This document shows positions 3,046 to 61,595 of a stretch of 64,000 nt of DNA, in pieces. The position numbers and the translations under genes are program-made. The notes beneath the pieces were generated by a model. That model saw only the letters and a program-made list of their open reading frames with translations, ran no database searches and was not told the origin of the DNA. Position 1 is the stretch's first letter, and each line of letters opens with the position of its first letter. The stretch is from Pristiophorus japonicus (lineage: Eukaryota), in assembly GCF_044704955.1 (NCBI RefSeq), contig NC_091984.1, forward strand, positions 145,824,001 through 145,888,000, read 5' to 3'.

Positions 3046-3050
3046 CCCTT

Positions 3051-7629: not shown

Positions 7630-8506
7630 CTGTGCAGTCCTGAGGGAGTGCTGCACTGTCAGAGGGGCAGTACTGAGGGAGTGCCGTACTGTCAGAGGGA
7701 CAGTACTGAGGGAGTGCCACACTTTCAGAGGGGCAACTGAGGGAGTGCCGCACTGTCAGAGGGGCAGTACGGAGGGAGTGCTGCACTGTCAGAGGGGCAG
7801 TACTGAGGGAGTGCCGCACTGTCGGAGGGGCAGTACTGAGGGAGTGCCATACTGTCAGAGGGGCAATACTGAGGGAGTGCCACACTGTCAGAGGGACAGT
7901 ACTGAGGGAGTGCTGCACTGTCAGAGGGGTAGTACTGAGGGAGTGCCACACTGTCAGAGGGGCAACTGAGGGAGTGCCGCACTGTCAGAGGGGCAGTACT
8001 GAGGGAGTGCTGCACTGTCACAGGGGCAGTACTGAGGGAGTGTTGCACTGTCGGAGAAGCAATATTGAGGGAGTGTTGCACTGTCAGAGGGGCAATACTG
8101 AGGGAGTGCTGCACTGTCAGAGGGGCAGTACTGAGGGAGTGCCGCACTGTCAGAGGGGCAATACTGAGGGAGTGCCACACTGTCGGAGGGGCAGTACTGA
8201 GGGAGTGCCGTACTGTCAGAGGGGCAATACTGAGGGAGTGCCACACTGTCAGAGGGACAGTACTGAGGGAGTGCTGCACTGTCACAGGGGCAGTACTGAG
8301 GGAGTGTTGCACTGTCGGAGAAGCAATATTGAGGGAGTGTTGCACTGTCAGAGGGGCAATACTGACGGAGTGCTGCACTGTCAGAGGGGCAGTACTGAGG
8401 GAGTGCCGCACTGTCAGAGGGGCAATATTGAGGGAGTGTTGCACTGTTGGAGGGGCAATACTGAGGGAGTGCCACACTGTCAGAGGGGCAGTACTGAGGG
8501 AGTGCC
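7630..8506 (+). repeat. 33-bp minisatellite (gtactgagggagtgccgcactgtcagaggggca)n derived from a SINE head
   Basis: About 26 tandem units, directly preceded by a B-box-like SINE 5' region at 7577-7640. Confidence 0.9.
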
Positions 8507-9522
8507 TGTCGACGGTTTTCTCGGGCTTACCGAAAACGCACCTCCTACTACAAGTTCTGGACGATAGGGATTATATGGACAGATGAGACTCAGACACACG
8601 TTTTTCGGGCTCAACCGTATTGTGTTTAATAAGATTAACAACACCACTCATAAACAGTGCAAAACAGTACAACCCTGGCTTGTCCAATTAGCCCTGCCGT
8701 GCTAAGTTACCACGGTTTAATAAAAGAACCCTCTCATGAAATAAACTAACACAGGACCCTCCCAGCACTAAACCCCTTGGGTTTGGTTGGGACTTACAAT
8801 CAACCCCTCACACAGCTAAGTGGTCTTGTGGATGTGTAGGCGCAGGCAATATGCTCACCCTGATTGCCCGTTGTCTTGCTTGCAGCTTCTTCCTGAACGT
8901 CTCGCTCCTGGGCTTTTTCCTGGGCTTTTTCCTGAGCTTTTTCCTGGGCTTTTTCCTGGGCTTTTTCCTGACCTTTTTCCGGGGCTTTCTTCCTCCTGAG
9001 CTTGAGCTTGTTGCAAAGTGGCTCCTTATATCCCCAAAACCCACCTCCTTTCCTCCCACCAATACTGACCGATGGATTGACTCCGGTGATCTGTCTGGAC
9101 TCCCCGCCCCGTGGCCTGGAGTGACTCGTAGCCTTTGAAATGTTTGTGAAAAATGATATTTTGTTTTCCCGCTCCCAGGCCTTGCATCTGGAGAGACAAT
9201 GGGTGCTGATTACTGGATGTCTGTCGTTTCCTGAGTTGATGGTCCCCATTAGCAGGTAATGGGTTTCGATCACAAACCGATCTTGCTTAACCGGCTTATC
9301 TTCTGGAAGGCAATGGGCCGGCCATTTCCTGCCTTGCACCAGTTTGGGTTGGGACTGAGTGGTGACTGTGCTTTAATAATGTGAAGGCACAGTGTCTCTG
9401 AGTTACCTCTCGGAGTATTGTTCCCAGTAATCACTTTAGATGGTGATGACATCAATGGGCCTGGGTTCCCTGCCACCCAGCCTGTCAGTGTGAAATGTCC
9501 GGTTGTATATTAATGCACCTCA
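8507..9522 (-). mobile_element. Probable solo LTR (~1 kb)
   Basis: TG...CA ends flanked by GTGCC (8502-8506 and 9523-9527); minus-strand TATA-like GATATAAG near 9030 and ATTAAA near 8628; internal 12-bp repeat cctgggcttttt. Confidence 0.5.
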
Positions 9523-12560: not shown

Positions 12561-12747
12561 CTGAGCGCTGATTCTAACGCCGGGCGGTCGGTGCCTCCTC
12601 AAACGGCAAAATTCACCGTCCACAGATACTGCCTGATCTGCTGAGTATTTCCAGCATTTTCTGTCTTCCCAGAGGCCTTTCTTTGCCATCTGAGGCCTTG
12701 CAAATGTCTAGCATCACTCCCTACACACTGAAAAATCTTTTACATCT

Positions 12748-13088
12748 TTTTTTTAAAATTCGTAGCCAATCTTTCCAATTCTTTGTCAAATCACAAACGC
12801 CAGAGGTCACCTTGCACACATCAAGGATCACTCTGCGCCAATGCTCTTAGCCAAAAGGCCGAGAGCCACTGCACTGTTCCTGGAAGTACTACACTACCAG
12901 GTTCGTGCCATGGAGGTGGATGGGTCAGGCCCCCCACACACCTCCGTGGAGGTGGATGGGTCAAACCACCCCACCCACCTCCTATTTCCAAAAAGTTTGC
13001 AGAACCACCTTCCTGATCCAGGGAGAACCACTTTGGGGTCATGGTTACTCCCCTGTCAGGTCAGTTACGCATGATCTTAGCCAAAAGG
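12748..13088 (-). mobile_element. U2/U1 snRNA-chimeric SINE, near full-length (copy S1)
   Basis: Minus strand: ccttttggctaagatca (U2 5'), actgacctgacaggggagtaaccatgaccccaaagtggttctccc (U1 5'), Sm-like ctttttgg, U2 3' acctggtagtgtagtacttccaggaacagtgca, second ctcggccttttggctaaga, tail, poly(A). Confidence 0.88.
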
Positions 13089-13097
13089 AAACCTTTT

Positions 13098-13333
13098 TTT
13101 TTTATTTATTTTTTTTATTTAATTCGTAGCCAATCGTTCCAATTCTTTGTCAAATCACAAACGCCAGAGGTCACCTTGCACACGCCAAGGATCACTCTGC
13201 GCCAATGCTCTTAGCCAAAAGGCCTAGAGCCACTGCACCGTTCCTGGAAGTACTGCAATACCAGGTTCGTGCCATGGAGGTGGATGGGTCAGGTCCCCCA
13301 CACACCTCCGTGGAGGTGGATGGGTCAAGCCAC
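13098..13333 (-). mobile_element. U2/U1-chimeric SINE, 5'-truncated (copy S2)
   Basis: Same 3' part and A-rich tail; 17-bp TSD ccaaaaggaaacctttt at 13081-13097 and 13334-13350. Confidence 0.88.
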
Positions 13334-13356: not shown

Positions 13357-14724
13357 TTTTTTTTTTTTTTTTTTTTTTATTTCAAAATATACTTTATTCA
13401 TAAAAAAGAATCTGTACAGTACATTCGATGGCATTTCATTACATTTCGCTGCGGTCAGCAATCCCATACAATACATCTGGGTGCCGACGGCAGTTTCGTT
13501 CGTTACATTTCTCGTTTTTCTGTTCAACTGCGATTCAGTACAATAAACAGGGTACATTGTGGTACATTTACACAAATTTCATTTCATGTGTTACATTACA
13601 GAGCCCGGAATGGGTGATGGTACATTTACATTTTTTTTCCTTTTCAAACTTGCATTTCATAACACACCTTACATTGTACATGGCACTACATTGATGTTTA
13701 CAGGTTTGGTGCTCTATGTACACAAAGTGTAAATTTCAAATACAAATACAGCCCGAGGGAGTTTGGTGCTGATTTCTGCCCCCGGGTTTTCCGTGGCGGA
13801 AGGGTTTTAGACTGTGGCCCTACCCCACCGTGCCTTTGCGGCGACTGCACCAATTTTCAGTGCGTCCCTCAGCACGTATTCCTGGATCTTGGATTGCGCC
13901 AGTCTGCAACATGCGGACGTGGTCATCTCCTTGTTCTGGAAGACCAGCAAGTTTCGGCAAGACCAAAGGGCGTCTTTGACCGAGTTGATGGCCCTCCAGC
14001 AGCAGGTGATGTCTGTCTCGGTGTGTGTCCCTGGGAACAGCCCGTAGAGCACAGAGTCCTGTGTTACGGAGCTGCTTGGGATGAACCTCGACAACAACCA
14101 CTGCATCTCTTTCCAGACCTGCGTCGCAAAGGCGCAATCCTGAAGGAGGTGGGTGACAGTCTCGTCCGCCCCGCAGCCGGCCCGGGGGCACCGTGCCGTG
14201 CTGCTGAGGCGTCGGCTGTGCATGAACACTCTGACGGGTAGGGCCCCCCTCACCGCCAACCAAGCTGCGTCTTGGTGCTTGTGTGTAAGCTTTGGCGATG
14301 AGACGTTCTGCCAAACAAGTTCGACAGTCCGCTCAGGGAACCACCCGACAGGGTCCACCGTCTCCTTCTTTCGTAGGGTGTCCAGGACCTTACGTGCTGA
14401 CCACTGTTTGATGGCCTTGTGGTCAAAGGGGTTTCTTTTGAAGAACTTTTCCACAAAGGACAGGTGGACAGGCATGGTCCAACTGGTGGGGGCGTTTCGC
14501 GGCAGCGTGGCCAGACCCATCCTTCTCAACAAAGGGGACAGGTAGAACCTCAGCACGTAGTGACACTTGGTGTTTGCGTACTGGGGGGCTGTGCATAGCT
14601 TGATGCAGCCGCACACAAAGGTGGCCATCAGGATGAGGGCCACGTTCGGAACGTCCTTTCCTCCACTGTCCAGAGATTTGTACATCGTGTCTCTGCGGAC
14701 ACGGTCCATTTTGGATCTCCAGAC
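13357..14724 (-). mobile_element. Tx1-clade (L1-group) non-LTR retrotransposon, 5'-truncated, with an intact 300-aa ORF2 C-terminus
   Basis: ORF 13807-14709 with zf-RVT motif WLAVRGALP..CPRAGCGADETVTHLLQDC; 3' UTR with AATAAA and long poly(A); TSD aaccttttacatct at 13343-13356 and 14725-14738. Confidence 0.88.
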
Positions 14725-15139: not shown

Positions 15140-15600
15140 TAATGGAAGATCACGACCAATGCATCCAGTATCTCTTTAGCCACCTCTTTTAAAACCTTAG
15201 CATCTAGGTTATCAGCTATATGGGATTTATCAAATTTTACTCTCAATAATTTCTCCAGTACTGCTCCTTTACTAATACTAATTGCTTTAATTTCCTCATT
15301 CTCATTAGACCCTTGTTTCCCCACTATTTCCAGGATGCTTTTTGTATCTTTTTCTGTGAAGGCAGATACAATGTATTTGTTTAATATCCTTACCATGTTC
15401 ATATACCCCATTATAATTTCTCCTGTCTCTGCCTGTAAGGGACCCACGTTTACTTTCGCTGAGCTCTTCGTTTTTCTTGAACTATAGAAGCTTTTATAAT
15501 CCACGTGTATGTCCCTTGCTAGTTTACTGTCACATTGTATTGTGCCGGGGTCAATTCCCTGATCGTCCTTTGCTGAATTCTGAAATCCTCCCAAATCTCA
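15140..15600 (-). mobile_element. CR1 LINE fragment
   Basis: NVGPLQAETGEIIMG...VLKEVAKEILDALVVIF. Confidence 0.8.
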
Positions 15601-15700
15601 GGCTGACATTTTTGTCATCCAGAAATTCTCCTTCACCTGCGAAGTTCTGTTCTAACCATGGTTGTGTGCTTTCACTCTCTACATATGTCCGGTCAAAAGC

Positions 15701-16858
15701 CTGTTCCCAGCTCTCACACTCTATCTATGACCATCCACACTCTGTTCCCAGCTCTCACACTCTATCTATGACCATCCACACTCTGTTCCCAGCTCTCACA
15801 CTCTATCTATGGCCATCCACAGTCTGTTCCCAGCTCTCACTGTCTATCAATGACCATCCACACTCTGTTCCCAGCTCTCACTGTCTATCTATGACCATCC
15901 ACACTCTGTTCCCAGCTCTCACTGTCTATCTATGACCATCCACAGTCTGTTCCCAGCTCTCACACTCTATCTATGACCATCCACAGTCTGTTCCCAGCTC
16001 TCACACTCTATCTATGACCATCCACAGTCTGTTCCCAGCTCTCACACTCTATCTATGACCATCCACACTCTGTTCCCAGCTCTCACACTCTATCTATGAC
16101 CATCCACAGTCTGTTCCCAGCTCTCACTGTCTATCTATGACCATCCACAGTCTGTTCCCAGCTCTCACACTCTATCTATGGCCATCCACAGTCTGTTCCC
16201 AGCTCTCACTGTCTATCTATGACCATCCACACTCTGTTCCCAGCTCTCACACTCTATCTATGACCATCCACAGTCTGTTCCCAGCTCTCACACTCTATCT
16301 ATGACCATCCACAGTCTGTTCCCAGCTCTCACACTCTATCTATGACCATCCACACTCTGTTCCCAGCTCTCACACTCTATCTATGACCATCCACAGTCTG
16401 TTCCCAGCTCTCACACTATCTATGACCATCCACACTCTGTTCCCAGCTCTCACTGTCTATCTATGACCATCCACAGTCTGTTCCCAGCTCTCACACTCTA
16501 TCTATGGCCATCCACACTCTGTTCCCAGCTCTCACACTCTATCTATGACCATCCACACTCTGTTCCCAGCTCTCACTGTCTATCTATGACCATCCACACT
16601 CTGTTCCCAGCTCTCACACTCTATCTATGACCATCCACAGTCTGTTCCCAGCTCTCACACTCTATCTATGGCCATCCACACTCTGTTCCCAGCTCTCACA
16701 CTCTATCTATGACCATCCACACTCTGTTCCCAGCTCTCACACTCTATCTATGACCATCCACACTCTGTTCCCAGCTCTCACTGTCTATCTATGACCATCC
16801 ACACTCTGTTCCCAGCTCTCACACTCTATCTATGACCATCCATAATCTGTTCCCACCT
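15701..16858 (+). repeat. 41-bp minisatellite (ctgttcccagctctcacactctatctatgaccatccacact)n
   Basis: About 28 near-identical tandem units, period 41. Confidence 0.95.
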
Positions 16859-16899
16859 CACACTCCAGCAGTGCATGAGGCAAAACGTTTTAAAGGATT

Positions 16900-17270
16900 G
16901 CCCCTGGCCAACCTGAACTCACATCTTTCTCCAATTTCGCTCCGATCTCCCCTCATGCTCTCTCCGCCAACTTCCTGACCGTGTGACCACTTCCTGCTCC
17001 CTCGACCCTATTCCCACTAAACAGCTGACCACCCAACTTCCTTTTCTGGCTCACTTGTCAGCTGATGTGGTTAATGGTTCTCACCTCAGGTACTTTCCTC
17101 TCCTTGAAATCTGTGGCTTTCACCACTCTCCTCAAAAAACCGACCCTTGATCCCTCCCTTCCCGCCCCATCCTTGCAAACTACCGTCCCATCTCCAACCT
17201 CCCTTTCCTGTCCAAAGTCTTTGAACGTGATGTCATCTCCCAAATCCGTGCCCACCTTTCCCAGAACTCC
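16900..17270 (+). mobile_element. L2 LINE RT fragment
   Basis: LLKKPTLDPS and nucleotide pattern aactaccgtcccatctccaacctccctttcctgtccaaa (NYRPISNLPFLSK). Confidence 0.75.
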
Positions 17271-24780: not shown

Positions 24781-27700
24781 TGTAAAGTCCTATCCCCTCA
24801 GTACAGATTCACACGAGGCATGTCGTGAAGTCAAGGTCTCTCTGGACCTGCACCTTTATTTCACAGCTCTGGAATGCTGCACTTGCCTGAGACCTGTCCT
24901 TATATACCTGTCTCTTGCAAGTGCACCCCTGGTGGTTACAGGTCATATCTTATTACAGTCATGTATAGCATGTTAGGATACAGTTGTATATAATAATGTA
25001 AGATACATGACATCACCCTCCCCCAAGGTCTTATTGTCTTTATAGGTTCAATCTCTCAGGTGGTCGACTCTCTCGCGTGGAGCTTCTGAGTTGTGGTTCA
25101 GTTGTTTGCCTTGGTGTCTGTTTTTCTTTGGGTGTGGTTGCTGGTATCTCACCTGGGCTGTCTGTTTCGATTGGTGTGATTGTTGTTGACTCGCCTGGGC
25201 TGTCTGTTGGGATTGCCCTTTCCTCAGGTTGTTCCCTCTGTCTGTTCACCAGGTGTGGTGCGAGTTCCACATTGTAGTCTGCCTCTGGTTCCACAGTGTT
25301 GTTGGTAAATCTGCTTTTGACTTGGTCTACATGCCTCTGGCAGGTTTTGCCATTGTCCATTTATACTACCAGTAGCCTGTTTCCTTCCTTGCCCGTTACT
25401 GTCCCTGCAAGCCATTTGAGACCCCTGCCGTAGTTGAGGACAAACACTTTGTCCCCTATCTCATTCCATCTCCTCCTTGAATTTCTGTCATGGTACTCAG
25501 CCAGCTTACGGCGCTTTGCCTCAATGATTTCGTGCATGTCTGGGAGGATTAATGAGAGCCTTGTTTATCAAGTCCTTTTCATCAACAGTTGCGCAGGGAG
25601 CATCCCAGTCAATGAGTGCGGACGAGATCTGTATGCCAGAAGCAGTCACGACAGGCGACCCTGCAGCATGGGACCTTGGATTTTAAGCATGCCTTGTTTA
25701 ATGATTTGCACTGCTCTCTCTGCCTGGCCGTTGGAGGCCGGCTTGAATGGTGCCATCTTGACGTGATTTATGCCGTGGTCAATTATAAAATCTTGGAATT
25801 CTGCGCTGGTGAAGCACGGACCATTGTCACTGACCAATATGTCAGGGATTCCGTGCGTTGCAAACATGGTTGCGAGGCTCTCCACAGTGGTGGAGGTTGT
25901 GCTCGAGTTTAAAATGGTGCATTCGATCCACTTTGAAAATGCATCTACAACTACGAGGAACATTTTGCCCATGAATCGGCCCGCAAAGTCTACGTGCACC
26001 CGCGACCACGCTTTGGTAGGCCAGGGGCTCACGGGAGCCTCCCTTGGGGCATTGCTGAGTTGGGCACAAATGATGCACCTTCGGACACAGAGCTCCAAGT
26101 CCGCGTCAATACAAGGCCACCAGACGTGGGATCTGGCTATGGCCTTCATGAGAATGATCCCCGGGTGCTCGCGGTGGAGCTCTCGGACAAATGCCTCTCT
26201 GCCTCGCAGAGGCATGATGACTCGGCTGCCGCACATCAGGCAGTCTGCTTGTAGGGACAGCTCATGCATGCGCCTGTGAAAGGGTTTTAATTCCTCGGGG
26301 CAGGCATCGCGAGCCTCTGCCCAGTCACCGGTTAGGACATATCTTTTTACTAAGGATAACGTGGGGTCGCTGGCCGTCCAGGCTTTGATTTGGTGAGCCA
26401 TCATGGGCGAACCTGTGGACTCAAAGGCATTGATTGCCTTGACTATCTCACAGTCCTGTTCGTCAGACCCTTCCGTGGTCGCCAGGGGTAGCCTGCTGAG
26501 CGCGTCGGCACAGTTGTCTGTGCCTGGTCTGTGCCTTATGGTATAGTCGTAGGACGCCAGCATGAGTGCCCACCGTTGAATTCGTGCTGAGGTGTTGGTG
26601 TTTATTGTCTTGCTCTTGGATAGGAGGGACGTGAGGGGCTTGTGGTCGGTTTCTAACGCGAACTTGGCCCCGAAAAGGTATTGGTGCATCTTTTTGACAC
26701 CGTACACGCACGCGAGCACCTCCTTCTCTACCATTCCGTACCCGCACTCCGCCCGCGCAAGAGACCTGGAGGCATAAGCTATGAGTTGTAATTTGCCCGC
26801 ACTATTGACATGTTGTAAAAGGCACCTGACTCAATACGCTGATGCATCGCATGTGAGAACTAGCTTTTTACCTGGATCAAAGAAAGTCAAAACACTGTTG
26901 GAACACAGAAGGTTGCGTACCTTATTGAAGGCGCGTTCCTGGGCGTCCCCCCAAAACTTATCGCACCCCTTCCTCAGTAGCACATGGAGAGGCTCCAGCA
27001 GCGTGCTTAAGTTCTGCATAAAGTTCCCAAAGTAATTTAGTATCCCGAGAAAGGCACGCAGTTCTGAGACATTACGGGGCCTGGGTGCCAGGCGAATTGC
27101 TTCTGTTTTGGACTCTGTTCGGCGGATTCCATCAGTGGCAATCCTTCTGCCCAAAAATTCAACCTCGGGTGCGAGAAACAGGCACTTGGATTTCTTGACT
27201 CGTAGGCCTACCTGATCCAACCGCTTTAGTACTTCCTCCAAATTACAGAGATGGGAGTCGGTGTCCCTGCCCGTGATAAGTATGTCGTCTTGAAATACAA
27301 CCGTCCCCGGGATGGACTTGAGCAGACTCTCCATGTTGTGCTGGAATATGGCAGCTGCCGACCTGATGCCGAATGGGCATCGATTGCACATGAAAAGGCC
27401 TTGATGTGTGTTGATGGTGGTGAGTAGCTTGGATTCCTCGGTCAATTCTTGTGTCTTTTACGCAGATGTGAGGTCTAGTTTTGAGAAAAGTTTACCTCCA
27501 GCCAATGTGGCAAATAAGTCCTCCGCTCTGGGCAGCGGGTACTGGTCCTGTCGGGAGACTCTGTTTATGGTGGATTTGTAGTCCCCACAGATTTGTACGG
27601 ATCCATCAGACTTCATGACTGGGACGATGGGACTTGCCCAGTCGCTAAATTCCACAGGTGATATAATGCCTTCCCGCAGAAGCCTGTCTAGTTCGTGTTC

Positions 27701-29097
27701 AATCTTTTCCCTCATCACATAGGATACAGCTCTGGCCTTGTGATGGACCGGTCTAGCATCGTGTGTGATGTAGATTTTGACTTTGGCCCCTTTGAAAATG
27801 CCCACACCTGGCTGAAAGAGATGTTCAAATCGCTTTATAACTGTTGAGCAGGAGGTCCATTCCTCTAATGACATGGCGTGGATATCATCCCATTTCCAGT
27901 TTAGTTTTGCCAGCCAGCTTCTCCCCAGCAGTGCTGGGGGGTCTCCGGGGACAATCCACAGGGGAAGTCGGTTCACTGTCCCTTTGTGTATGACAGAGAG
28001 CATGGCGCTGCCGAGGAATTGTACGATTTCTTTGGTATAAGTCCTTAGTGTGGTGTCGACCCTTGTGAGTTTTGGTCTGTCTCTTTTATGTGGCCACAGT
28101 TTTCAAATTGTTGAGCGCCCATGAGAGATTGTGTCGCTTCCGTATCCAGCTCCATGTTGACAGGTATCCCGTTGAGTAGGACCCTCATCAATATAGGAGG
28201 CGTCCTGTTGTAGGAGCAGCGGCCATTGATTGTGTTGATCCACTGTACATCGGTGTCCCGGGTACTGTCCCCACCGTCTTCTGGTCCGCTTTCCGACCCA
28301 TCTGATTCGTATACCAGCCGAGTTGCCATTATTTTGCACATGCGGGCCAAATGCCCTGTATATTCACAGTTCCTGCAAACAGTCTGCTGAAATCGACATC
28401 CCATTGACGAGTGCCCACCCCCGCACCTCCAGCACAGACCGGTTCCATTGTTCAAAGTGTTGCCAAAGAATGAGCTGTGTCTGGCTGATCTCTCTTGAGC
28501 TTCTCTCAGTTTGTAGTTGATTGCTCGCATTGTGGGTTGATGAGGTGTGAACGGCCGTTCCTGTGGCCCTTGATGGCTTCTGGCGCCAATGATTGCTGTC
28601 GAGAGCCTGTTCGCCCGGTTTTGTCTGTGTGTGGAGGTAGCAGCTTGTTTAGTGCTGTGAACAACTTCTTCCGATATTTCGTTAGTTGTCGTACCTGCAT
28701 TGTAAATCAACCTCGTTTCTTCTTCCCCGACCAAGAATGTCTGTGCAACCAGTGCTGCTGCCTCTAAGGTCAGGTTCTTGGTCTTTATGAGCTTTCTGAA
28801 TATGCCTGCGTGGCCTATTCCTTCAATGAAAAAGTCTCTCAGCATTTCTCTCCTCAGTTCATCGGAGAACTCACATAAACTAGCCAACCTCCGAAGTTCT
28901 GCCATGAAGTCGGGTATGCTCTGGCCCACACAGTGTCTGTAGTTGTAGAACCTGTGTCTGGCCATGTGTAGGCTGCTCGCTGGCTTCAGGTGGTCTCTTA
29001 CCAGTGTGCTCAATTCTTCAAATGACTTGCTTGCTGGTTTCTCGGGTGCCAGCAGATCTTTCATTAAAGCGTATGTTTTCGAGCCACAGCTGGTCAA
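24781..29097 (-). mobile_element. Gypsy LTR retrotransposon (gag-PR-RT-RH-IN, 3' LTR 24781-25012), 5' end missing
   Basis: gag CCHC CWRCGGGH; PR MELDTEA; RT WASPIVPV, FSKLDL, PFGI, FQDDILI; RH LTCDASAY, LETDHKPL; IN HPG..C..C, VHVDFAG, SDNGPCF, NGQAER; PPT next to the LTR at 25013. Confidence 0.93.
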
Positions 29098-32000
29098 GAC
29101 TGGTTTTCGTCATAAATCTGGGTGAGATGGGGCAGATGGTATCACTGCACCGGTGGCCATGGCTACCTTCCCCCGACCCATTACTGCGGTTCAGAGTGCA
29201 CCCATCACGGTCTCAAATGTTTGGGGAGAGACCGACGGCTCGGTCTTTTGGGCTGGGACTGTGGGATTCTTTCCTACCCTGTCCTTCCAGGGATTCCTAC
29301 AGTCCATTCTCCAATGCCCATTCTTCCTGCACCCAAAGCAGTTACACTTGGTTTCGGAAGGGTTACCCCCTTCCTGGTGCCAATCTTTCTTTCCCTGACT
29401 GGGTTTTAACTCATGTACCTTTCCCTTGGGTGGGTGCTCTTCCCCCCTGCAGTTCCGATATGCCATGGTCAGTTGCCTGATCACTGTTTCCTCGGTGGCT
29501 TGGGGGTTCCTCGGGTCAAACCAAAGCTCTGCTCTGACTTTGATCCGGGGTAGGCTGTTCGCCACTATGCTCCGGAGCCATTGTGCCCGTTCGCCCGGTG
29601 TAAGGTTTGTCCGGTCGAGAGCCATACTGCAGGTTCGCTGATACACAGGCCACAGCCTGTCAGCGAAAGCCTGAGGGGTTTCTCCCACAAGCTGCACTGT
29701 CCTCTCCACTCGGGAGAAGGGACTTCCCTCATTTAGACCCATGGTCTCCAGAACTTCATCCCGGACATCCTCATATGTACCCCTGCCCTTTCTGCACTCC
29801 GCCAAAAGGGACTGGTACAGCTTGCTGTCCAGGGAGAAAAGGAGCAGTTTTACCTGCTCTGAGTCATCACATCCGCTAATCTCGGCTGCCTGTTCCACTT
29901 CCATGAAGTGGACGGAAGGGTCTCCCTTATGTGTAAGCTTACTCAGGTGGCTTACCATAGCCCTCAACTGTTGGGTAGTGTGGGGAACCACGAATTGGCT
30001 CTCAAGAACCACCGGTGCTCCACCCACAGGCGCGCTGAACTTTTGCTGCCGGACCGGACACATTGGTCCCGGCTCCGACCCTTTCAGTTCTGGCTCACCC
30101 TTCTCTCCCTGCTGCCAAACCGAGTTAAACCCCGGCACCACAGGTGGTGGTGGTCCGTACTCCCTGCCTGCCTGAGCAATTGTCCCTTGTCCCTCCTTCC
30201 TGCTGCCCAACCGAGTTGTTCCCCGGCGCCACAGGGGGTGACTGAACAGTTTTCTCCTCCTCTTCCAGGTCTGCCCAGGTCGTACCCAGACTTATGAGGC
30301 ACACCATGCCTCTTGCCCTGGACAGAGCATGGTTTAAACTTTCAATTTGCTGCTGGCAGGGACTGTGATAGCCCGACTCAAACCCCTTAGTGCTGGTTAC
30401 TCTGTAGGCTGCCTGGATGTCTTTGACGCTCTCCTCCTGCTCTTTCATTTGTCTATTAAGGCGAGAGTTCTCTTCTTGCAGTATCAATTCATTTTTCCTG
30501 GCCTCGGTGACCTGACACTGCATTTCATCCAACCTATTTCTGAACTTCTTCCCTGTGCAAAGCCTTTCCTCGTTGTGCTCATGTAACTCTCTCATTAACC
30601 TTTCCCCTATGATTGTTTCTGCACTAGACTGTTCCTCTGCCTCTTTCAGTTCAGCCATTAGTTTCTCCACTGTGGAATCTAAGAGTTGGACCTGTTTATG
30701 CAGACATACTAGCCAAATTGCCTTTTCCACTGCCTTTTTGTGAGTTTTACCCTCTGTCCAATGGGCTGCAGCATCCCCTGGATGCTCAGCACGCAACAGA
30801 TCGCATACCCACTTCTTTGTTACATTTACTCTTTTGACCACATAGGAAGCAATCCTCTCTTCCATTTGACTTCTTTTCTCACAACCAAAGTCTGTCTCCT
30901 CACACCCCTTTTGCCGCAGTCCTGCCACGGTCGCCATTATGTAGGGGGTAGTGTTTTGGTCAGGTTTCTCTGACTCCTTGGCATTTTCGAGGCGCCCCAC
31001 ACCCTGGATTCTAGACTGTGGACTGATTTGGGGGTTGTGAGAAACTGAGACAGAGTCAATTGGGTAGGATGCAAAACTGGTTTTATTGTGTTCAAACAGA
31101 GTAAAAAGGCACGTTTTTAATAATCACAATAATCAGGTATAAATAGGGAGAAATGGCAACTCAAATAATCTATATTTGGGAAGAACACATTACACATATA
31201 ACAGATTTTTAAAAACACAGTCGTCCCACCTCCCAAAATACTTATGCACTAAACCTGGAAGGGGAAAACACACACGAACATCAACAGGTAGGAACAGTAA
31301 GAAAAACCCAACCTCCCAGACCCACTAGCTAGCTTGGTTAGAACTCTGGGGTTTCAGGGACCATGCTCACCAATTCCCTTTTGACAGTTCCCACTCCGGG
31401 GTTCGCCTTAGTTGTCCTGGTCCAGTTCCAAACTCTGGCGTTCGCCTTAGTTGCCCGAGTTCTGTACCCCGGACCTCGTTGGGGACTTCAACCTGCGTCA
31501 CTTCTTCAGTTGGGCTGAGTCCGCTGATGTGGTAAGGTGCGTATTGGACTTGTGGGGTGAGTATTCACTTTTCCTTGGTCAGGGTAGTCTTAAAAGTTTT
31601 GTTAGGTAATGTTTTACCCCTTGGTAGTGTAGGACCAGCTTGTAGAGTGGAAAAATCTTCGGTTTTTCTTCGGTTTGTCGGGTTGGTTCCGGTTGACTGT
31701 TTGATTGGTCGCGATGGCCCGAAACTTTCCGATAGTCGCTTTGAAAACCTGTTTACTGTCGTGGTGCTGTCCTTCTGGGTTTTAGAGATTCCTTTCGCCG
31801 GTGTTTCGGGGTCCCACTTTTCGAGGCTGGTGTTAAACTTATGCAACGAGACTGCTACCTCAATAGTATCTCTAGAAGCACCCCAAACTGCCAGAACAGA
31901 CCTGCAATTACACTAAAACATCTTCATGCCAAATCAGTTCTTGGGTTTTGTTTGAACTGTTCTGTCCATTGATTTTCAAATGTCTCCTTTGTCAGTGTTT

Positions 32001-35987: not shown

Positions 35988-38890
35988 AATGAACAGGTGG
36001 AGGCCATTCAGCCCCTCGAGCCTGTTCCCCCATTCAATCAGATCACGGCTCACCTGTATCTGAACTCCATCTACCCGCCTTGGTTTCACAAGTTCCAAGG
36101 CCTATACTATAGAGTTTAGAAGAATGAGAGGGGATCTCATTGAAACATACAAAATTCGAATAGGGCTTGACATGGTACATGTAGGGAGTCTAGAACCAGG
36201 GAAAAGGAGGGAGGGGAGGAGAGGAGGAGAGGGGCGAGGGGAGGGGGAGGGGGGTGGGAAAGGGATGGGAGGGGAAAGAGGCATGAAGGAAGGGGAGGAG
36301 GGAGGGAGTGCGAGGGATGGGGAGTGGGGGAAGGAGGGATTGGGAGGGGAGGAGTGGTGGAGGAAAGGGTGGAGAGGGTGATGGGGGGAGATGAGGGAGG
36401 GAGAGGGAGTGTGGAGGGAAAGGGATGGGAGGGAAGGGAGAAGTGAGGAATGGGGAGATGGGGGAGGGAGGGAGGGCAAGGGATGGGCGAGTGGGGGAGG
36501 GTGGGGTTGAGAGGGGGCGACTGGCTCGAGACGGGGAGCCTACTGTGGGAAAGGGAGGGGTGGAGGGGGGGAGACAGAAAGCAGAAAGCAAACTATAATC
36601 AGTTAGCCTAACATCTGTGGTTGGGAAAATGCTGGAGTCCATTATTAAGGAAGCTGTAGCAGGACATTTGAAAAAGCATCATTCAATCAAACAGAGTCAG
36701 TATGGTTTCAGGAAAGGGAAATCATGTTCGAAAAATTTGCTAGAAATCTTTGAGGATGTAACGAGCAGGGTGGATAAAGGGGAACCAGTGGATGTGGTGT
36801 ATTTGGATTTCCAGAAGGTATTCGATAAGGTACCACATAAAAGGCACAAGATAAAAGTTCATGGAGTTGGGGGTAATATATTCGCATGGATAGAGGATTG
36901 GCTAACTAACAGAAAACAGAGAGTCGGGATAAATGGGTCATTTTCCAGTTGGCAAACAGTAACTTGTGGGGTGCCACAAGGATCAGTGCTGGGGCCTCAA
37001 CTATTTACAATCTAGATTAATGATTAGATGAAGGGACCGAGTGTAACATAGTCAAGTTTGCTGATGATACGAAGATGGGTGGGAAAGCAAATTGTGAGGA
37101 GGATACAAAAAATCTGCAAAGGGATATAGAAAGGCTAAGTGAGCGAGGAAAAATTTGGCAGATGTAGTAAAAGGCGGGAAAATGTGTGGTTATCCACTTT
37201 GGCAGAAAGAGTAGAAAAGCAAATAAATTTTTAAATGGAAACAAATTGCAAAGTGCTGCAGTACAGAGGGACCTGTCTGTCCTTGTGCATGAAGCACAAA
37301 AAGATGGTATTCAGGTACAGCAAGTAATCAGGAAGGCAAATGGAATGTTGGTCTTTATTGCAAAGGGGATAGAGTATAAAAGCAGAGAAGTCCTGCTACA
37401 ACTGTACAAGGTATTGGTGAGGCCACACCTAGAGTACTGCATACAGGTTTGATCTCCATCTTTAAGGAAGGATGTATTTGCATTGGAAGCAGTTCAGAGA
37501 AGGTTCACTCGGTTGATTCCGGAGCTGAGGAGGTTCACTTATGAAGATAGGTTGAGCAGGTTGGGCCTATACACATTGGAGTTCAGAAGAATGAGAGGTG
37601 ATCTTATTGAAACTTATAAGATAATCAGGGGGTTCGACAAGGTGGATGCAGTGAAGATATTTCCACTCATCGGGAAAACTAAAACTAGAGGACATAGTCT
37701 CAGAATATGGGGTGCCCATTTAAAATTGAGATGAGGAAGAATTTTGTCTCTCAGAGGGATGTAAATCTGTGGAATTCTCTGCACCAGAGAGATGTGGTGG
37801 CTGGGTCATTGAATATATTTAAGGCAGAGATAGACAGATTTTTGAGCGATCAGGGAGTGAAAGGTTATGGGGAGCGGGCGGGAAATTGGAGCTGAGTCCA
37901 TGATCAGATCATTCATGATCTTATTAAATGGCGGAGCAGGCTCGAGGGGCCAAATGGCCTACTCCTTTTCCTATTTCTTATGTGGTGCTGGGTAACAGTC
38001 TCACACACACACACACACACCAACAGACAGTGCTGGGTAAGACACACTAACATGCAGGGACATGTACACGGTGATACACTGACTGCTCCTCTCCCTAAGC
38101 TGAGGCCTCACTCGGTACAGTTTTGTGCTGCTGCCACGAGCTACACGTTAACGAGAGAGAATGCAACGTTGTGACTGTGGCCTCTGCCCCCAGATTGCCC
38201 CCAGCAGTCAGCACCGAGTGCACAGTGCGATCCCAACACCCACAGTGTGCGGAGTGAGAACCAATGCTCAGACTGAGAGGGTTTAATCCCAGCAGCTTTT
38301 AGTGTCTCTAAATTTAATCTTGTGCACTCCAGGGGTTCGAGGTATAACTAATCGTTTTAAAATGATTGATAATTGGCTTTGAATCAAATCTCCTGCTGAC
38401 CTGCCATTGATTGACAGCCCACCCAGCCAATCAGGACAGACACTTACTGAAATGCAGCCAATCCAGCTGAGGGGGAGGTGGGACAATTCCAAAGCACTCG
38501 CCAGACACAGACTGAATATTCTTCACGTTTATTGCCTTTTACAGATTCACATTTACAGAAACAAGACTTGAATAAACAGCCCAGCGAGAGCGAGCTGGAG
38601 ACATTCACAGGGAGAATGCAGCTTTATTAAAACAGTTGTGGGGATTTTCTCCACACCGTGAGAATCCTGCCCCTTCAAACGGGGACAAAACCTTGAATTG
38701 TAATAGCAGGGTGAGCAGGGAGGGGGTCTGCTTACTGAAGCGACACTTCACAGTTTAACATTAGTTTTACTCTGCTGACAGTCTTCAGCATCTTCGAGAG
38801 GTTTTACTTGGCAGCACGAGTCAACACTGTCCCATCAAACACTCCCAGCGCAGGTACAGCACGGGTTAGATACAGAGTAAAGTTTCCTCC
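35988..38890 (-). other. Inverted paralogous copy of 61335-64000 (Ig C 3' flank)
   Basis: 38050-38890 is the reverse complement of 61335-62200 in unique sequence; flanking CR1 junctions are shared as well. Confidence 0.9.
36105..37980 (+). mobile_element. CR1 LINE fragments with a G/A-rich tract (36200-36570)
   Basis: [41 protein letters not shown]; 3' UTR. Confidence 0.88.
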
Positions 38891-41446: not shown

Positions 41447-41634
41447 NNNNNNNNNNNNNNNNNNNNNNNNNNNNNNNNNNNNNNNNNNNNNNNNNNNNNN
41501 NNNNNNNNNNNNNNNNNNNNNNNNNNNNNNNNNNNNNNNNNNNNNNNNNNNNNNNNNNNNNNNNNNNNNNNNNNNNNNNNNNNNNNNNNNNNNNNNNNNN
41601 NNNNNNNNNNNNNNNNNNNNNNNNNNNNNNNNNN
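41447..41634. other. Assembly gap (188 N)
   Basis: Run of N. Confidence 1.
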
Positions 41635-43682
41635 TTGTCTCTGTCCCTTCCTCTCTCTATAGATCTCCAATTATCGTTCTGTCCCTTCCTCTCTCCAACT
41701 CTCTCGTTCCGTATGTCTCGCTTTCTCTATCTCAACAACAACTTGTATTTATATAGTGCCTGTAACGCAGTAAAACACCCCAAGGCCCTTCACAGCAGTG
41801 TTATAAGACAAAACAGATAAATTTGACATGAGCCACATAAGGAGATGTCAGGGCAGGTGACCAAAAGCTGGGTGAGAGAGGTCGTTTTTATCTTTTCTTT
41901 CTCCTTCCCTCTCTTCATCTATCAATCTCTGGCTTTTTCTCTCTCTATCTGTCTCTCCCCCTCAATACACATTAACCCATAATATGCCTTAGCAATATCA
42001 AGCTGATAACCGGTTATCTGACCAACTATCCCACACATCAAAGGCATCTGAGTCAAACAGTCCTGAATAGCGCATCTAATGTGGATTGATTTGGAAGCCC
42101 GGGTACATATAGTGTCCATACTCCCTGCAATGTACTCTTGGACAGCCCTCCACACCAGGGCGATCAATTCTCCACAGTGATCATGGGTCACAGGAAGATT
42201 ACACATGGGTCCAATTCACAGGTAAGACTTTTGCAGTCATTGACCGCAATCGTTGTGTATGAGTCTCGGTATGTAGCTTCCTGTCCTGTGTGGAACCACA
42301 TCCTCTATAGTCACTTTCAATGGTCTATGCTGTGAACAAGGGATCACTAACATTACCTCGCTCTGAAGTTTGCTGCATTGTCAGAGGTGTCAAAGCGAGC
42401 TAGGGATTGTGACTCTGGTTGCATGGTGTTTGGATGGTCCATTTGATCCTGGGTTAATATATCAAGGGAAGGTTGTGTTGTTGCTGCTTACTGATCACCT
42501 TCTCCCCCTTGTGGTCATTGCTGCACTTTCCCCACATGGTGTTGCACTGTTGAAGTCGCAGATGAGAAAAACCTGCCTTTGTGAGCGAGGCAAAGTCTGT
42601 TGACCATGTGAGCTCTGTGATCTATTTAGCACTCAAATCACTGACTCCACACAGTCTGGTGTTGTAGTAACTGCTGTGACCTTAGTCCTTTATTGTTTAA
42701 CTCCAGAGTGTCTCTCAGGTGTGGTGGGCAGCCTTTTATACTCTGTCTTGCAGGTACTTTCAGCTCTCCCATCACAGTGCCATCTGTGGCACACCATTGT
42801 AACCATACATTTAATGTACCTGGACAATACATAACATCTCACTCCCCCCCCAATTCCAAAAGCCTTTGCCGGTAACCTCGGCATTGTTCGTCCTGGTTGA
42901 TTTGTGAGTATAAGTCCATGACCATCCACTTCACTCTTCTTCCCATGTAGAGATTATGCTTGCGATCCAGTGCAAGCATGTGGTATTTGCAGTCCTTACA
43001 TGGGTGATGAAGTACACGAGCATAACCTCCAACAGAAAGCAGGTATACATAGACAGTACATTTGTATGGTACATATAGATGCATTGAAGAATTATAACAA
43101 AAGGTTGCAGGTACACTGAACAGTTATTTAATCCCAGCTCCACTGGGTGAGGTACAGTGGGGCCATAGAGCCCCTTTTTGCCTGAGGTAATGGGCTGCGC
43201 TGAGACAGGGTATCGCAACTAGTGCATTGCCTCTGTTCTCACAAAGTAGTCACCTTTGTGGCTCATCTGCAGCCGCTGAACCATTACATGAATCACCTAA
43301 AATCGGAAATCGCATTAGTCCATTAGTCATGTTAGTCACAGATCCATTAGCCCTTTTACTTGTACCTTGTGGTAATAACTCTTTTCGTAAATCATATCGA
43401 TCATTTTAAACACAGTAATCATTTCAGCTTCAAAATATTAACTTGTGTCATAAATCACGTCATCATACAAATCACATTACTCATTTAGACTCGCTCTTGC
43501 CTTACAAGGGCCAAGGGCCCTTTTAAGACTCCAGGGTTCATTTCCCTTTTAAGACACCATCTTGTTTTTCCCACGAGACTTCCACTGGGCTCCGTCATTT
43601 TAGGTGCTCTGCTTGCCTTTCTCTGGAGAACTCTGCTGCCACGAGGCTCGCCACCATCTTGAGCTCGCTGTGCCCTTTTACA

Positions 43683-44290
43683 TTGAAACAACTCCGCCAA
43701 CAGTTGCAGCCAATTACAGAAAAGGAGGTTCCAAGCCAAAAGAGACGTAGCGTACCTGAAGAAATGGTAGGTGGTGGGTGGGGGGGCCTGATCCATCCAC
43801 CTCCATGGCACGAACCTGGTATTGCAGTGCTTCCAGGAACGGTGCAGTGGCTCTAGGCCTTTTGGCTAAGAGCATTGGCGCAGAGTGATCCTTGATGTGT
43901 GCAAGGTGACCTCTGGCGTTTGTGATTTGACAAAGAATTGGAACGATTGGCTACAAATTAAAAAAAAAATACCTGAAGAAATGGTACAGAAAAGGCGTCG
44001 GTTAAACACTCATTTTGTTGAGGAGGAACTTCCTGCAATTACTGAACCAATTGAGGATGTGAATGGCTTGACTGCACTGCTGAGCGAGTTGGGGAAGAAA
44101 AATGTGAATCCCGTTTCTGCTCTATCTATTTTGCAAGCGCAGAGGATGCCATCTGCATTTCCAAAAGGTGGAGAATTCAGAGGCTTCTGGCATGACATGT
44201 TACTTTCTTCGTGCAGTTGTGGATGGGGTTGAGTTTAAAGAAGGAATAGGTGTCAGCAAAAATAAATGGCCAAGAACAATTGTGCTGAAG
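43683..44290 (+). pseudogene. Captured ADAD1/ADAD2-like (dsRNA-binding domain) mRNA fragment, antisense to the LTR element and split by a SINE
   Basis: KNVNPVSAL..QAQRM /frameshift/ YFLRAVVDGVEFKEGIGVSK resembles the ADAD1 dsRBD as recalled ([36 protein letters not shown]); the frame runs through once the SINE is removed. Confidence 0.65.
43770..43969 (+). mobile_element. U2/U1-chimeric SINE, 5'-truncated (copy S3)
   Basis: U2 3' motif acctggtattgcagtgcttccaggaacggtgca, family tail, poly(A); 17-bp TSD tacctgaagaaatggta at 43753-43769 and 43970-43986. Confidence 0.9.
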
Positions 44291-44560
44291 CCGAAACCGC
44301 GGGACGCTTGGGTGTCCTTGATCACTCACACCTCGGAGATCTGCCCGTACCTGGAGAGCACTTCTTCCAGGGCCGGCTCGTCTGTGTTGAGATTTAGACC
44401 GCCGATGAACAGATTTCCTTCTCCGGACCCTTTTGCGAGGTTGGTTTGCTGGGTGTTTTCTCTGCTGAATTCTAGCCTGCTGCTGCCTATCAGTTCACTC
44501 TCGACTCTCTCTCGGGATCTACCACACTTGACCGTACCCGCGAACAATAACACACCGGCC
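44283..44560 (-). pseudogene. CIRBP: Captured CIRBP/RBM3-like mRNA 5' fragment (putative 5' UTR plus N-terminal half of the RRM)
   Basis: [46 protein letters not shown] versus CIRBP [49 protein letters not shown] (RNP2 and RNP1); the upstream boundary is approximate. Confidence 0.8.
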
Positions 44561-46399
44561 CCCGCACCGCTGCATCCACAGGAGCCGGCCTCTGCCCGCG
44601 GGCCAACGGTGCCTGCTGGAGCAGCCCGTCGAAGCCCTTCTTTCTCCTCCAGCTCAGTCGGCGCTGCTCTTTGGGAATCCGGGGAACAGTGGTCTGTGGA
44701 GGAATGAAGTCTTCCCAGCTCCCACGGACCTTCCCCATCCACCTCCTGCTGAGTAGCACCGGCCCATCGCCTGCAATGATCCACAAAGATAAACCGCGCG
44801 TCTCGCCCCCGTGATATACCTGCACATCGGCTCTGCCAAGAACAGGTATCAGTTCCTTGGTGTAGGTGCACAGCTTTGCCGTGACCGGGACCAGCTTGGG
44901 TCGTGCAGCTGGGTTGATCCACAGTTTATCAAAAGTTTCCTGACTCATCATCGACTGACCCGATCCAGTGTCCACTTCCATACTCATTGGGACTCCGTTA
45001 ATCTTGACTTCCAAAACCACTGGGGCTGAATCGTTGGTACAAGTATACAGTCCAAACGCCTCATCTTCTTCAAGTCGAGGTCATAAATGCCCGGCTGATG
45101 ATGATGGCTTGCTGCAGGCTGACTGTAGGTTCAGTGGATAGCAGCTTGTGAAGGAGACCCTCATGGCCAATCCCCATAACAAAAACATCTCGCAACGCCT
45201 CTTCAAGGTGTGTGCCTAAATCACATGGCACCGCGAGTCTCCTGATGTCCGCAGCATATTTGGTGACATCCTGGCCCTCAGGTCTGCAGTGGTGGTAGAA
45301 TTTGTGCCTGGCCGTGAGGATGCTCTCCTTCAGTTTCAGTTGGTCACGAATAAGTTCAATCAGCTCCTCATATGACTTGTCCTTGGTGCTCGCGGGTGCC
45401 AGCAAATACCTGACGAGACAGTAAACCTCATCGCCACAACTGGACAGCAATATCGCCTTACGCTTCTCTCTCAGTGCGTTCGTGTCCCTCGTCAGGTCGT
45501 TTGCTATAAAGTAGTACTCGAGCCTTTCCATAAAGGCCTCCCAATCATTACCCACTGTAAAATCCTTTAGCGAGCCCAGAGTAGCCATGGTTGTGTGAAG
45601 CTCATCCGTGCCCTCATCACCAATGTGATGTATGTAGCACTCAAATCGCTGACTCCACACGGTCTGGTGTTGATATAACTGCTGTGACCTTAGTCCTTTA
45701 TTGTGTAACTCCAGAGTGTCTCTCAGATGTGGTGGGCAGCCTTTTATACTCTTGCAGGTACTTTCAGGTCTCCCACCACAGCGCCCTCTGTGGCGCACCA
45801 TTGTAACCTTACATTTAATGTACCTGGACAATGCAGAACAAGCTCTTCACCTGGTGGATTGTAAACATAGACTGCTGCTGCTTGGACCAGTTGACCCCTT
45901 CTAACATGCTGTCTGAAGCGCTGTCGTCCCCAGTCTTTCGTCACGGCCCCCAGTTTGAGAATAAAATTTGACAACTGCGACCAGCGGCTGGTAATGTGCT
46001 CCTTTCTGATCCTGGACACAAACCCAGCCAGCAGTGCTCACCCTCCGTGCTCTCCATTTTACACTGATCACATTCCAGGCCTGCTTCATGCTCACTGCTG
46101 CCCATTCATTATCTCTCTCCCAGTTTACAATCCAACACTTATCACTTGTTTGTCGCTTTCTCAGGTTTTATTTTCATTACTTAATTTGTTCTTCCGTCAC
46201 AGTAATGCTGCTTATTTTAATTATGTATATTTTTTTGTAATTATGACCAAATATGATGTCGCGTTCCATTTGCTGGTGTAATGAAACGGCCGGTAATTTA
46301 ATGCGAGCTGCTCCTGTTTGCACCACACTTCCCATCAAGTTGTGGCGACGGAGCGAGAGCAGCTCCCAGTAAATTCCCAGAGTCTTTGATTCACAGCAT

Positions 46400-54307: not shown

Positions 54308-55361
54308 ATTTACTTCTCGGCCTTTTGGCTAAGATCTGCATAACTAACCTGACCAGCCACCATGACGTCCGGGTGGTTCCTCCCTGGTCAGGAAGGTATA
54401 TGCTTACATTTTTGTAAACAGGAGGTGGGTGGGATTGGTGACCCATCCACCTCCACGGAGGTGTGTGGGGGACCTGACCCATCCACCTCCATGGCACGAA
54501 CCTGGTATTGCAGTACTTCCAGGAACGGTGCAGTGGCTCTAGGCCTTTTGGCTAAGAGCATTGGCGCAGAGTGATCCTTGACTGGTGCAGGGTGACCTCT
54601 GGCGTTTGACAAAGAATTGTAACGATTGGATAACGATTGGACATGAATTTAAAAAAAAAAAAAAAAATTTACTTCTCGGCCTTTTGGCTAAGATCTGCAT
54701 AACTAACCTGACCAGCCACCATGACTTCCGGGTGGTTTCTCCCTGGTCAGGAAGGTATATGCTTACATTTTTGTAAACAGGAGGTGGGTGGGATTGGTGA
54801 CCCATCCACCTCCACGGAGGTGTGTGGGGGACCTGACCCATCCACCTCCATGGCACGAACCTGGTATTGCAGTACTTCCAGGAACGGTGCAGTGGCTCTA
54901 GGCCTTTTGGCTAAGAGCATTAGCGCAGAGTGATCCTTGACTGGTGCAGGGTGACCTCTGGCGTTTGACAAAGAATTGTAACGATTGGATAACGATTGGA
55001 CATGAATTTAAAAAAAAAAAAAAAAAAATACTTCTCGGCCTTTTGGCTAAGATCTGCATAACTAACCTGACCAGCCACCATGACCTCCGGGTGGTTTCTC
55101 CCTGGTCAGGAAGGTATATGCTTACATTTTTGTAAACAGGAGGTGGGTGGGATGGCTTGACCCATCCACCTCCACAGAGGTGTGTGGGGGACCTGACCCA
55201 TCCACCTCCATGGCACGAACCTGGTATTGCAGTACTTCCAGGAATGGTGCAGTGGCTCTAGGCCTTTTGGCTAAGAGTATTGGCGCAGAGTGATCCTTGA
55301 CTGGTGCAGGGTGACCTCTGGCGTTTGACAAAGAATTGGACACGAATTAAAAAAAAAAAAA
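54308..55361 (+). mobile_element. Head-to-tail trimer of full-length U2/U1-chimeric SINE (units start about 54308, 54668 and 55029; period 359)
   Basis: Each unit starts with cttctcggccttttggctaagatc (identical to U2 nt 5-28), contains the U2 3' stem-loop IV and ends in an A-run. Confidence 0.92.
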
Positions 55362-60965: not shown

Positions 60966-61124
60966 TGTGTCAGGGACAGTCCGCGGGGAGATGCAACTTT
61001 AAATAGAACAGGGGGTGAGCCGGGAGGGCAAAGGTCATTGTCAGCACTGCATTTCTACTCTCTTCCTTCTCGGGACTGGGTCAGGGAAAGCATCTGAGGG
61101 TCAGGGGGTAAGGCACGTTATTGG

Positions 61125-61400
61125 GGCAGTGTCGAGGGAGCTTTACTCTGTATCTAACCCGTGCTGTACCTGCCCTGGGAGGGTTTGATGGGGCAGTGTA
61201 GAGGGAGCTTTACTCTGTATCTAACCCGTGCTGTACCTGCCCTGGGAGGGTTTGATAGGGCAGTGTGGAGGGAGCTTTACTCTGTATCTAACCCGTGCTG
61301 TACCTGCCCTGGGAGTGTTTGATGGGACAGTGTCGAGGGAGCTATACTCTGTGTCTAACCCGTGCTGTACCTGCCCTGGGAGTGTTTGATGGGACAGTGT
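61125..61400 (+). repeat. 67-bp tandem repeat (gagggagctttactctgtatctaacccgtgctgtacctgccctggg...), about 4 copies
   Basis: Units start at 61134, 61201, 61268 and 61335. Confidence 0.9.
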
Positions 61401-61595
61401 TGACTCATGCTGCCAAGTAAAACCTCTCGAAGATGCTGAAGAGTTTCAGCAGAGTAAAACTAATGTTAAACTGCGAAGTGCCGCTTCAGTAAGCAGACCC
61501 CCTCCCTGCTCACCCTGCTGTTACAATTCAAGGTTTTGTCCCCGTTTAAAGGGACAGGATTCTCACGGTGTGGAGAAAATCCCCACAACTTTTTT

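Follow-up and report, generated by a model that had tools for sequence, protein, structure and literature searches.

The 64,000-nt stretch of Pristiophorus japonicus contig NC_091984.1 analysed here (RefSeq assembly GCF_044704955.1, positions 145,824,001 to 145,888,000 of the forward strand; called the window below, with position 1 as its first letter) holds two related long terminal repeat (LTR) elements, A1 (87–3045, + strand) and A2 (42616–45840, − strand), in which pieces of host coding sequence stand in a slot behind the protease. We attribute them, with a probability of roughly 0.6 for the explanation as a whole, to a very abundant non-autonomous Ty3/Gypsy-like LTR family of this squalomorph shark that encodes gag and protease only; its cargo would have been acquired by LTR-mediated retroposition with template switching, in A2 with one lap on a circular ADAD1-like template, and then amplified. 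The A2 slot contains an antisense ADAD1-like piece whose beginning and end adjoin one another in the parent mRNA.

A1 (2.96 kb) is flanked by the target site duplication (TSD) CCCTT (82–86 and 3046–3050). Its 5′ LTR (TG..CA, 87–307) and 3′ LTR (2825–3045) are 94.1% identical. Between them lie a decayed and frameshifted region with gag, zinc knuckles and an aspartyl protease (351–1636), whose tail ends in ..PSWRRSK at a purine run (GGAGAAGAAG, 1628–1637), then the slot (1637–1973) and a non-coding 3′ internal region common with A2 (1974–2824), which is closed by a polypurine tract (PPT), GGAGGGGAGAG, at 2810–2820. A2 (3.2 kb), flanked by AGCTC (42611–42615 and 45841–45845), has the same plan on the minus strand: a 5′ LTR (45624–45840), gag (45591–45073), protease (45020 to ∼44740) and protease tail within 44642–45623, a purine run at the tail (GGAGGAGAAAGAAGGG, 44650–44635), the slot, a 3′ internal region (42837–43681) homologous to A1 1974–2824, and a 3′ LTR (42616–42836) with 92.2% identity to the 5′ LTR. 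TGG follows the 5′ LTR and a purine run adjoins the 3′ LTR (at 42842–42851 in A2); no tRNA gene was found within the 64-kb window.

Alignment of A1 with the reverse complement of A2 by blastn gave four blocks, 87–871 with 45840–45068 (87% identity), 1205–1636 with 45071–44642 (88%), 1974–2285 with 43681–43385 (75%) and 2284–3045 with 43456–42616 (80%). A2 has no counterpart of A1 872–1204, the zinc-knuckle part, with the deletion point at 45068–45071. Nucleotide homology ends at A1 1636/A2 44642 and restarts at A1 1974/A2 43681, just where a preliminary description of this DNA, made from the letters alone, had put the breakpoints. Its account of A1 and A2 as TSD-flanked, collinear copies that lack reverse transcriptase (RT) and integrase is likewise upheld by the TSDs, the blastn blocks and Pfam. 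As a side observation, three spaced AAGATGG/AAAATGGCGGC-like motifs (caagatggtggc, aaaatggcggcgc and caagatggcatc) open the shared 3′ internal region (A1 1990–2100, A2 43560–43665).

In the scanned open reading frames (ORFs) of A1 and A2 Pfam detected an aspartyl protease (Asp_protease_2) and a weak zinc knuckle only, with no RT, RNase H or integrase, and Atlas assigned the gag of the family to Retrotrans_gag at 0.96. The window also contains, at ∼25600–29100 (− strand), an autonomous element of Ty3/Gypsy type, now decayed, with a gag zinc knuckle, protease, RT (RVT_1), RNase H (RT_RNaseH) and integrase (rve), to which the A-family gag is 41% and the nucleocapsid–protease part 37–44% identical. 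Because gag and protease resemble those of an element equipped with RT, RNase H and integrase, we regard the A family as a pol-less Ty3/Gypsy-like lineage; the element at ∼25600–29100 is a distant relative of the family and not its helper.

The repeat that hosts A1 (1–86 plus 3046–3196) has a paralog at 36566–36798 with a single, uninterrupted CCCTT (36713–36717), which provides a direct empty site for A1. For A2, one contig of the DNA run X1 (depth 63, shorter side 70 letters) joins 42610 to 45841 and keeps one copy of the TSD; the contig stems from an allele without A2 or from a paralogous site. A young polymorphic insertion is unlikely, since the A2 LTRs have diverged by 7.8%.

The slots had been described as unrelated. 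This holds at the nucleotide level, but the A1 slot is itself RBM3/CIRBP-type coding sequence (tblastn E = 8e-28), and one of the two parents of the A2 cargo belongs to the same gene family. When the A2 protease-tail ORF was used as the query, the UniRef search returned P. japonicus proteins P0012–P0014, labelled ‘RNA-binding protein 3-like’ or uncharacterized, which begin with the protease tail of the element (MGKVRGSWEDFIPPQ..PSWRKKK), continue with QFIGSLNSHTDEQT.EEQF.. and finish with a Gly-rich ..SGERDY..HRDYD tail. P0012 matches RBM3 residues 5–36 and 59–80 in the PDB, and tblastn places its residues 1–65 at A1 1540–1740 and its residues 102–142 at 1763–1876; across P0012–P0014 the E-values on the A1 slot run from 8e-28 to 8e-21. 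Because these proteins map there, the slot is taken to be an old, decayed RBM3/CIRBP-type cDNA in sense orientation, joined to the protease in the same frame at the purine run. It reads ..KQFISSLNS..TLEEQLF..GGGGYGGGSYDLGERDF.. in the pol frame and spans the parent from about codon 6 through the Gly-rich C-terminus plus a short tail. P0012–P0014 are probably copies of the transposon that were mistaken for genes in annotation and, as P. japonicus copies of the A element carry the annotation ‘RNA-binding protein 3-like’, counts of RBM3/CIRBP genes in sharks are probably inflated by such chimeras.

The A2 slot (43682–44641) is made of four parts: a 155-nt stretch to which no parent could be assigned, a CIRBP-like piece, an ADAD1-like piece and a later insertion of a short interspersed element (SINE) derived from the U2 small nuclear RNA (snRNA). 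The sense CIRBP-like piece, the antisense ADAD-like piece and their direct fusion (44287–44290) had been recognized correctly in the preliminary description, which had overlooked the 155-nt stretch, the nested SINE and the permutation of the ADAD piece.

The CIRBP-like piece (44287–44486, − strand, sense to the element) is 200 nt long and includes ∼65 nt of 5′ untranslated region (UTR) and the first ∼45 codons, read as 32 residues, an in-frame stop and 13 further residues. In the PDB its first part matches human CIRBP residues 4–36 with E = 1.3e-8 and RBM3 with E = 3.3e-8. Coverage in two further sequencing runs, X5 and X6, which are probably RNA, is very high exactly over 44235–44492 and collapses past 44486, where the contigs continue with other letters. 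The N of ‘EGN’ and the P of ‘DEP’ are private to A2; all other contigs have K and Q at these residues. A derivation of this piece from the A1 slot is excluded by the presence of the 5′ UTR and start region, which the A1 type lacks, by its sequence (YGQISEV versus YRPIAEV) and by a likeness of at least 85% to the present-day mRNA. One DNA contig (43671/44315) runs from the element 3′ region into the CIRBP piece across 22 diverged CIRBP-like letters, with the ADAD piece left out; having a short side of 29 letters, it faintly suggests copies without the ADAD piece, which may be a deletion derivative or a subfamily with CIRBP alone.

The 155-nt stretch (44487–44641, − strand) is GC-rich and open in the protease frame. 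It occurs in multiple copies in DNA and is almost missing from the run containing the CIRBP mRNA. It has no match elsewhere in the window, its similarity to the A1 slot is not significant (z = 1.9), and the junction ORF 44329–44700 returned no match when used as query in a word-indexed protein search. A remnant of the RT start was considered as a candidate and rejected: a pol-frame alignment to the protease–RT linker of the autonomous element in the window scored 19 versus a shuffle mean of 21.

The ADAD1-like piece lies antisense to A2 (+ strand of the window) and is built of two parts, which we call V and U. Part V starts with a segment at 43678–43769 (..ITLKQLRQQLQPITEKEVPSQKRRSVPEEMV), which in the parent comes after the double-stranded RNA-binding domain (dsRBD); it resumes beyond the SINE and ends with QKRRRLN at 43987–44010, where the codon act (44008–44010) forms a non-colinear joint to part U. 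Part U (44011–44289) runs from HFVEEELPAITEP.. via the dsRBD to ..AKNNCAE and contains three frameshifts; X5 contigs restore its frame by addition of AC after 44123 and removal of one base each at 44263 and 44267. The frameshifted dsRBD pieces were missed by Pfam, and in the PDB they gave the first dsRBD of PKR only, with E = 0.15. An exhaustive HMMER search with the frameshifted dsRBD core among 1.84 billion representatives found a single relative, a 602-aa protein with dsrm and A_deamin domains named ADAD1-like, and a follow-up search produced elasmobranch ADAD1/2-like proteins only. The closest of these relatives is the ADAD1-like protein of P. japonicus itself, with 91% identity in the dsRBD core. 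Part V is matched in tblastn by residues 188–203 of P0005, 219–247 of P0004 and 185–213 of P0006.

All orthologs have the order ..HFVEEELPAITEP..dsRBD..AKNNCAE-ITLKQLRQQLQ.., while in the cargo part V (ITLKQL..QKRRRLN) precedes part U (HFVEEE..AKNNCAE). By tblastn the end of P0005 residue 187 lies at 44289 and the start of residue 188 at 43677, which puts neighbouring residues of the parent at opposite ends of the piece. A contig present both in X5 (depth 575, the same as in the rest of the transcript) and in X1 links 44289 with 43678 through one additional A; its reading, ..CAE|ITLKQL.., follows the linear order that is normal for the parent. The ADAD piece measures 395 nt once the SINE and a single copy of its TSD are subtracted; with the missing base it makes 396 nt, or 132 codons. 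Given these lengths and the adjacency of its ends in the parent, the piece corresponds to one complete turn around a circle, within the margin set by the junction microhomologies.

A permuted copy of one lap is best explained by a circular template, and in our view the circle would be a back-spliced circular RNA (circRNA). The V–U joint (44008–44010) falls at the end of a 22–26-aa segment that is present in two of the nine orthologs and absent from the other seven. This optional segment is joined seamlessly in the cargo, and part U starts where the orthologs vary in length. Judged from these ortholog indels, the end of V and the start of U look like exon boundaries of the gene models.

At both ends of the ADAD piece short microhomologies of 3–4 nt were observed. 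GTAA (− strand, 43681–43678) is common to the element 3′ region and the ADAD parent, since homology to the element reaches 43681 and homology to the parent starts at 43678. At the fusion with the CIRBP piece the TTC of the GFGF codon (44289–44287) overlaps the end of the ADAD match; this TTC microhomology is in part deduced. Neither gene piece has a poly(A), a TSD or a recognition site of a long interspersed element (LINE) of its own in the sequence at 43678, 44287–44290 and 44641. Both pieces are truncated at their 3′ ends and joined tail to tail, and they replace the A1-type sequence rather than interrupt it. The protease-side junction adjoins a purine run of 10–16 nt in both copies (GGAGAAGAAG in A1 and GGAGGAGAAAGAAGGG in A2), similar to the 3′ PPT GGAGGGGAGAG.

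The poly(A) and TSD of an ordinary LINE-mediated retrocopy, which had been proposed as evidence against capture by the LTR element, occur in the A2 slot at one place. At 43770–43969 (+ strand) the ADAD piece is split by a 5′-truncated U2-snRNA-derived SINE of 200 nt with a poly(A) tail, flanked by a 17-bp TSD (tacctgaagaaatggta, at 43753–43769 and 43970–43986); this SINE is a later LINE-type insertion. (The alternative that the 17 bp belong to the SINE proper was excluded by an alignment of six copies.) An origin of the whole cargo as nested LINE-mediated retrocopies in an already integrated A2, which the SINE might seem to favour, is most improbable and for the gene pieces already contradicted: they have neither poly(A) nor TSD, are 3′-truncated and fused tail to tail, stand in place of A1-type sequence and are multi-copy. 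Sister copies of the SINE at 54309–55257 are scored as U2 by Rfam; the surrounding region, 54308–55361, is a head-to-tail trimer of ∼360-bp units of the same SINE family as the A2 insert, with U2 scores of 52–54 bits. Further copies lie on the minus strand at 12747–12945 and 13111–13309, adjoined by an ORF (13810–14709, − strand) with a zf-RVT domain, the C-terminal part of a LINE RT.

The multi-copy state of the A2 cargo follows from X1, in which single cargo positions are covered by 14–22 distinct contigs, all of which differ from the private changes of A2. Summed contig depth in X1 is not a copy number and was used, together with contig multiplicity, as a rough order only; it decreases from LTR, gag and protease to the 3′ internal region, then to the 155-nt stretch with the CIRBP piece, then to the ADAD piece and finally to the flanks. 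By this order the A2 type is a small minority, vastly outnumbered by the A1 type. There is no sign of function for the cargo. Both copies are decayed, A2 with an in-frame stop, three frameshifts and the nested SINE in its cargo, and A1 with frameshifts.

The replacement of pol, the lack of own poly(A) and TSD, the microhomology at two junctions and the multi-copy cargo together form the signature of LTR-mediated capture, and in this respect the earlier proposal that an LTR element had captured pieces of host mRNA in place of pol stands. We propose the following sequence of events. In an old step the pol of the family would have been replaced by an RBM3/CIRBP-type cDNA, in frame with the protease tail at the purine run, which would have given rise to the A1 type. 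A2 would represent a minor subfamily, in which additional template switches of the RT inside the particle remade the slot, first to the 155-nt piece, then to a highly expressed CIRBP-like mRNA, whose 5′ UTR and initial ∼45 codons would have been taken up in sense orientation, then via TTC to the ADAD1-like template, of which one circumference (395 of 396 nt) would have been copied, antisense and permuted, and at last via GTAA back to the element 3′ region. If the ADAD template was a back-spliced circRNA, and if plus-strand synthesis was the stage at which it was copied, the antisense orientation of the piece would be explained as well. The chimera, with both LTRs kept, would then have been amplified in trans; A2 would have integrated with a 5-bp TSD, later gained the U2-SINE and decayed. 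Directly observed are the anatomy, the parents, the permutation, the microhomologies and the multi-copy state; that templates were switched within the particle, that one of them was a circular RNA, and on which strand each switch took place, is what we infer behind this structure.

Several considerations weigh against this scenario. The back-splice and the loss of introns are deduced from ortholog indels, and the V–U joint lies inside a shared ‘LNA’ motif (..SLNAAHFVEEE upstream, ..RRRLNA.. downstream), with the consequence that a linear template with a jump by microhomology also suits this joint and is a live alternative to the circle. The 155-nt stretch has no explanation in the capture scheme. 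Copy numbers rest on summed contig depths and not on true copy counts. Finally, capture of cDNA fragments during DNA repair of a master copy would yield the same final structure.

This last possibility is the main rival for the mechanism: a double-strand break or deletion in a genomic A1-type master copy would have been patched by end joining, with free CIRBP and ADAD cDNA captured in random orientation, and the patched copy transcribed and amplified afterwards. We consider it unlikely, although not negligible. Patching would produce an antisense ADAD piece without any plus-strand switch, its end joining would be suited equally well by microhomologies of 3–4 nt, and a filler such as the 155-nt stretch is typical of patch repair. 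Still, the permuted one-lap ADAD piece would require a circular or self-joined cDNA in this case too, a random break is not expected to swap the whole resident cargo at both of its old boundaries, and the documented animal cases have been attributed to template switching (PMC5131818).

The preliminary description went further and saw a Pack-type family that repeatedly loads transcripts at a fixed hotspot, the former pol site. Two different cargo states do occupy the same coordinates, and cargo variation within the family is confirmed; moreover, in A1 and A2 the protease-side junction adjoins a purine run resembling the 3′ PPT, and a fixed switch-back site was reported for BLASTOPIA by Tan et al. 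(PMC5131818). Repeated loading is nevertheless not established by the two states examined, both of which involve the RBM3/CIRBP family. Because one gene family is involved in both, the shared boundaries may be due to descent, in which an A1-type template was remodelled into the A2 type, or to homology-assisted switching with abundant CIRBP mRNA, and the large excess of the A1 type over the A2 type fits one old capture and one rebuilt subfamily. For these reasons we find a built-in hotspot for unrelated transcripts improbable. About equally doubtful is a more specific idea, in which the polypurine run at the protease end (CTGGAGGAGAAAGAAGGG), being similar to the 3′ PPT, would act as an internal site of plus-strand priming or pausing, the family would be a serial capturer with repeated exchange of cargo, and one-lap copying of circRNAs would generate antisense permuted inserts. 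If true, it would offer a specific mechanism by which circRNAs are retro-inserted, a process that still lacks an explanation.

Elsewhere in the window there are minisatellite arrays at 15590–16994 (41-bp units), 7604–8591 (33 bp), 61057–61458 (67 bp) and 10439–10816 (16 bp), and a run of Ns at 41447–41634.

Pack-MULE and Pack-CACTA elements belong to the DNA transposons and copy genomic DNA, introns included; the capture of v-onc genes by retroviruses begins from read-through transcripts. A1 and A2 resemble both in being mobile, helper-dependent elements with fragments of host genes, and differ from them in that no selective function is evident. The label ‘Pack-type’ given to the family earlier is acceptable as an analogy, but not literally, since A1 and A2 have direct LTRs, gag and protease and are not DNA transposons with terminal inverted repeats.

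Gene pick-up by retroelements in this way is already known. The maize Bs1 is a pol-less LTR element with segments of several host genes acquired in separate events (PMC13317346); the A family shares with it the absence of pol and the presence of several host-gene segments, whereas Bs1 is a low-copy plant element with an expressed hybrid ORF, and the ORFs of A1 and A2 are broken. LTR-mediated retroposition has been described in flies, mosquito, zebrafish, chicken and mammals by Tan et al. (2016, Genome Res, PMC5131818), who found retrocopies in the place of pol, microsimilarity where the sequences join, chimeras of several genes and their renewed amplification as non-autonomous elements. Our elements agree with these chimeras in that a retrocopy replaces a part of the internal ORF while both LTRs are kept, in the absence of poly(A) and TSD at the retrocopy, in the short microsimilarity at the GTAA junction and, as far as deduced, at the TTC junction, and in the later amplification as a non-autonomous LTR element. 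They differ in the shark host, the very high abundance of the carrier, the old RBM3-type cargo and the presence of one antisense, circularly permuted piece; the A family thereby contributes an example from cartilaginous fish to LTR-mediated gene capture, with cargo of more than one round.

A clean permuted insert of one circumference also bears on the question of how circular RNAs are reverse transcribed into genomes. CircRNA-derived pseudogenes in mouse, enriched for flanking LTRs, were reported by Dong et al. (2016, Cell Res, PMC4897178). Like them, the ADAD1-like piece has non-colinear coding segments, no poly(A) and an association with LTRs; unlike them, it is a copy of one circumference, lies antisense inside an intact paired-LTR element and has a back-splice site that is putative.

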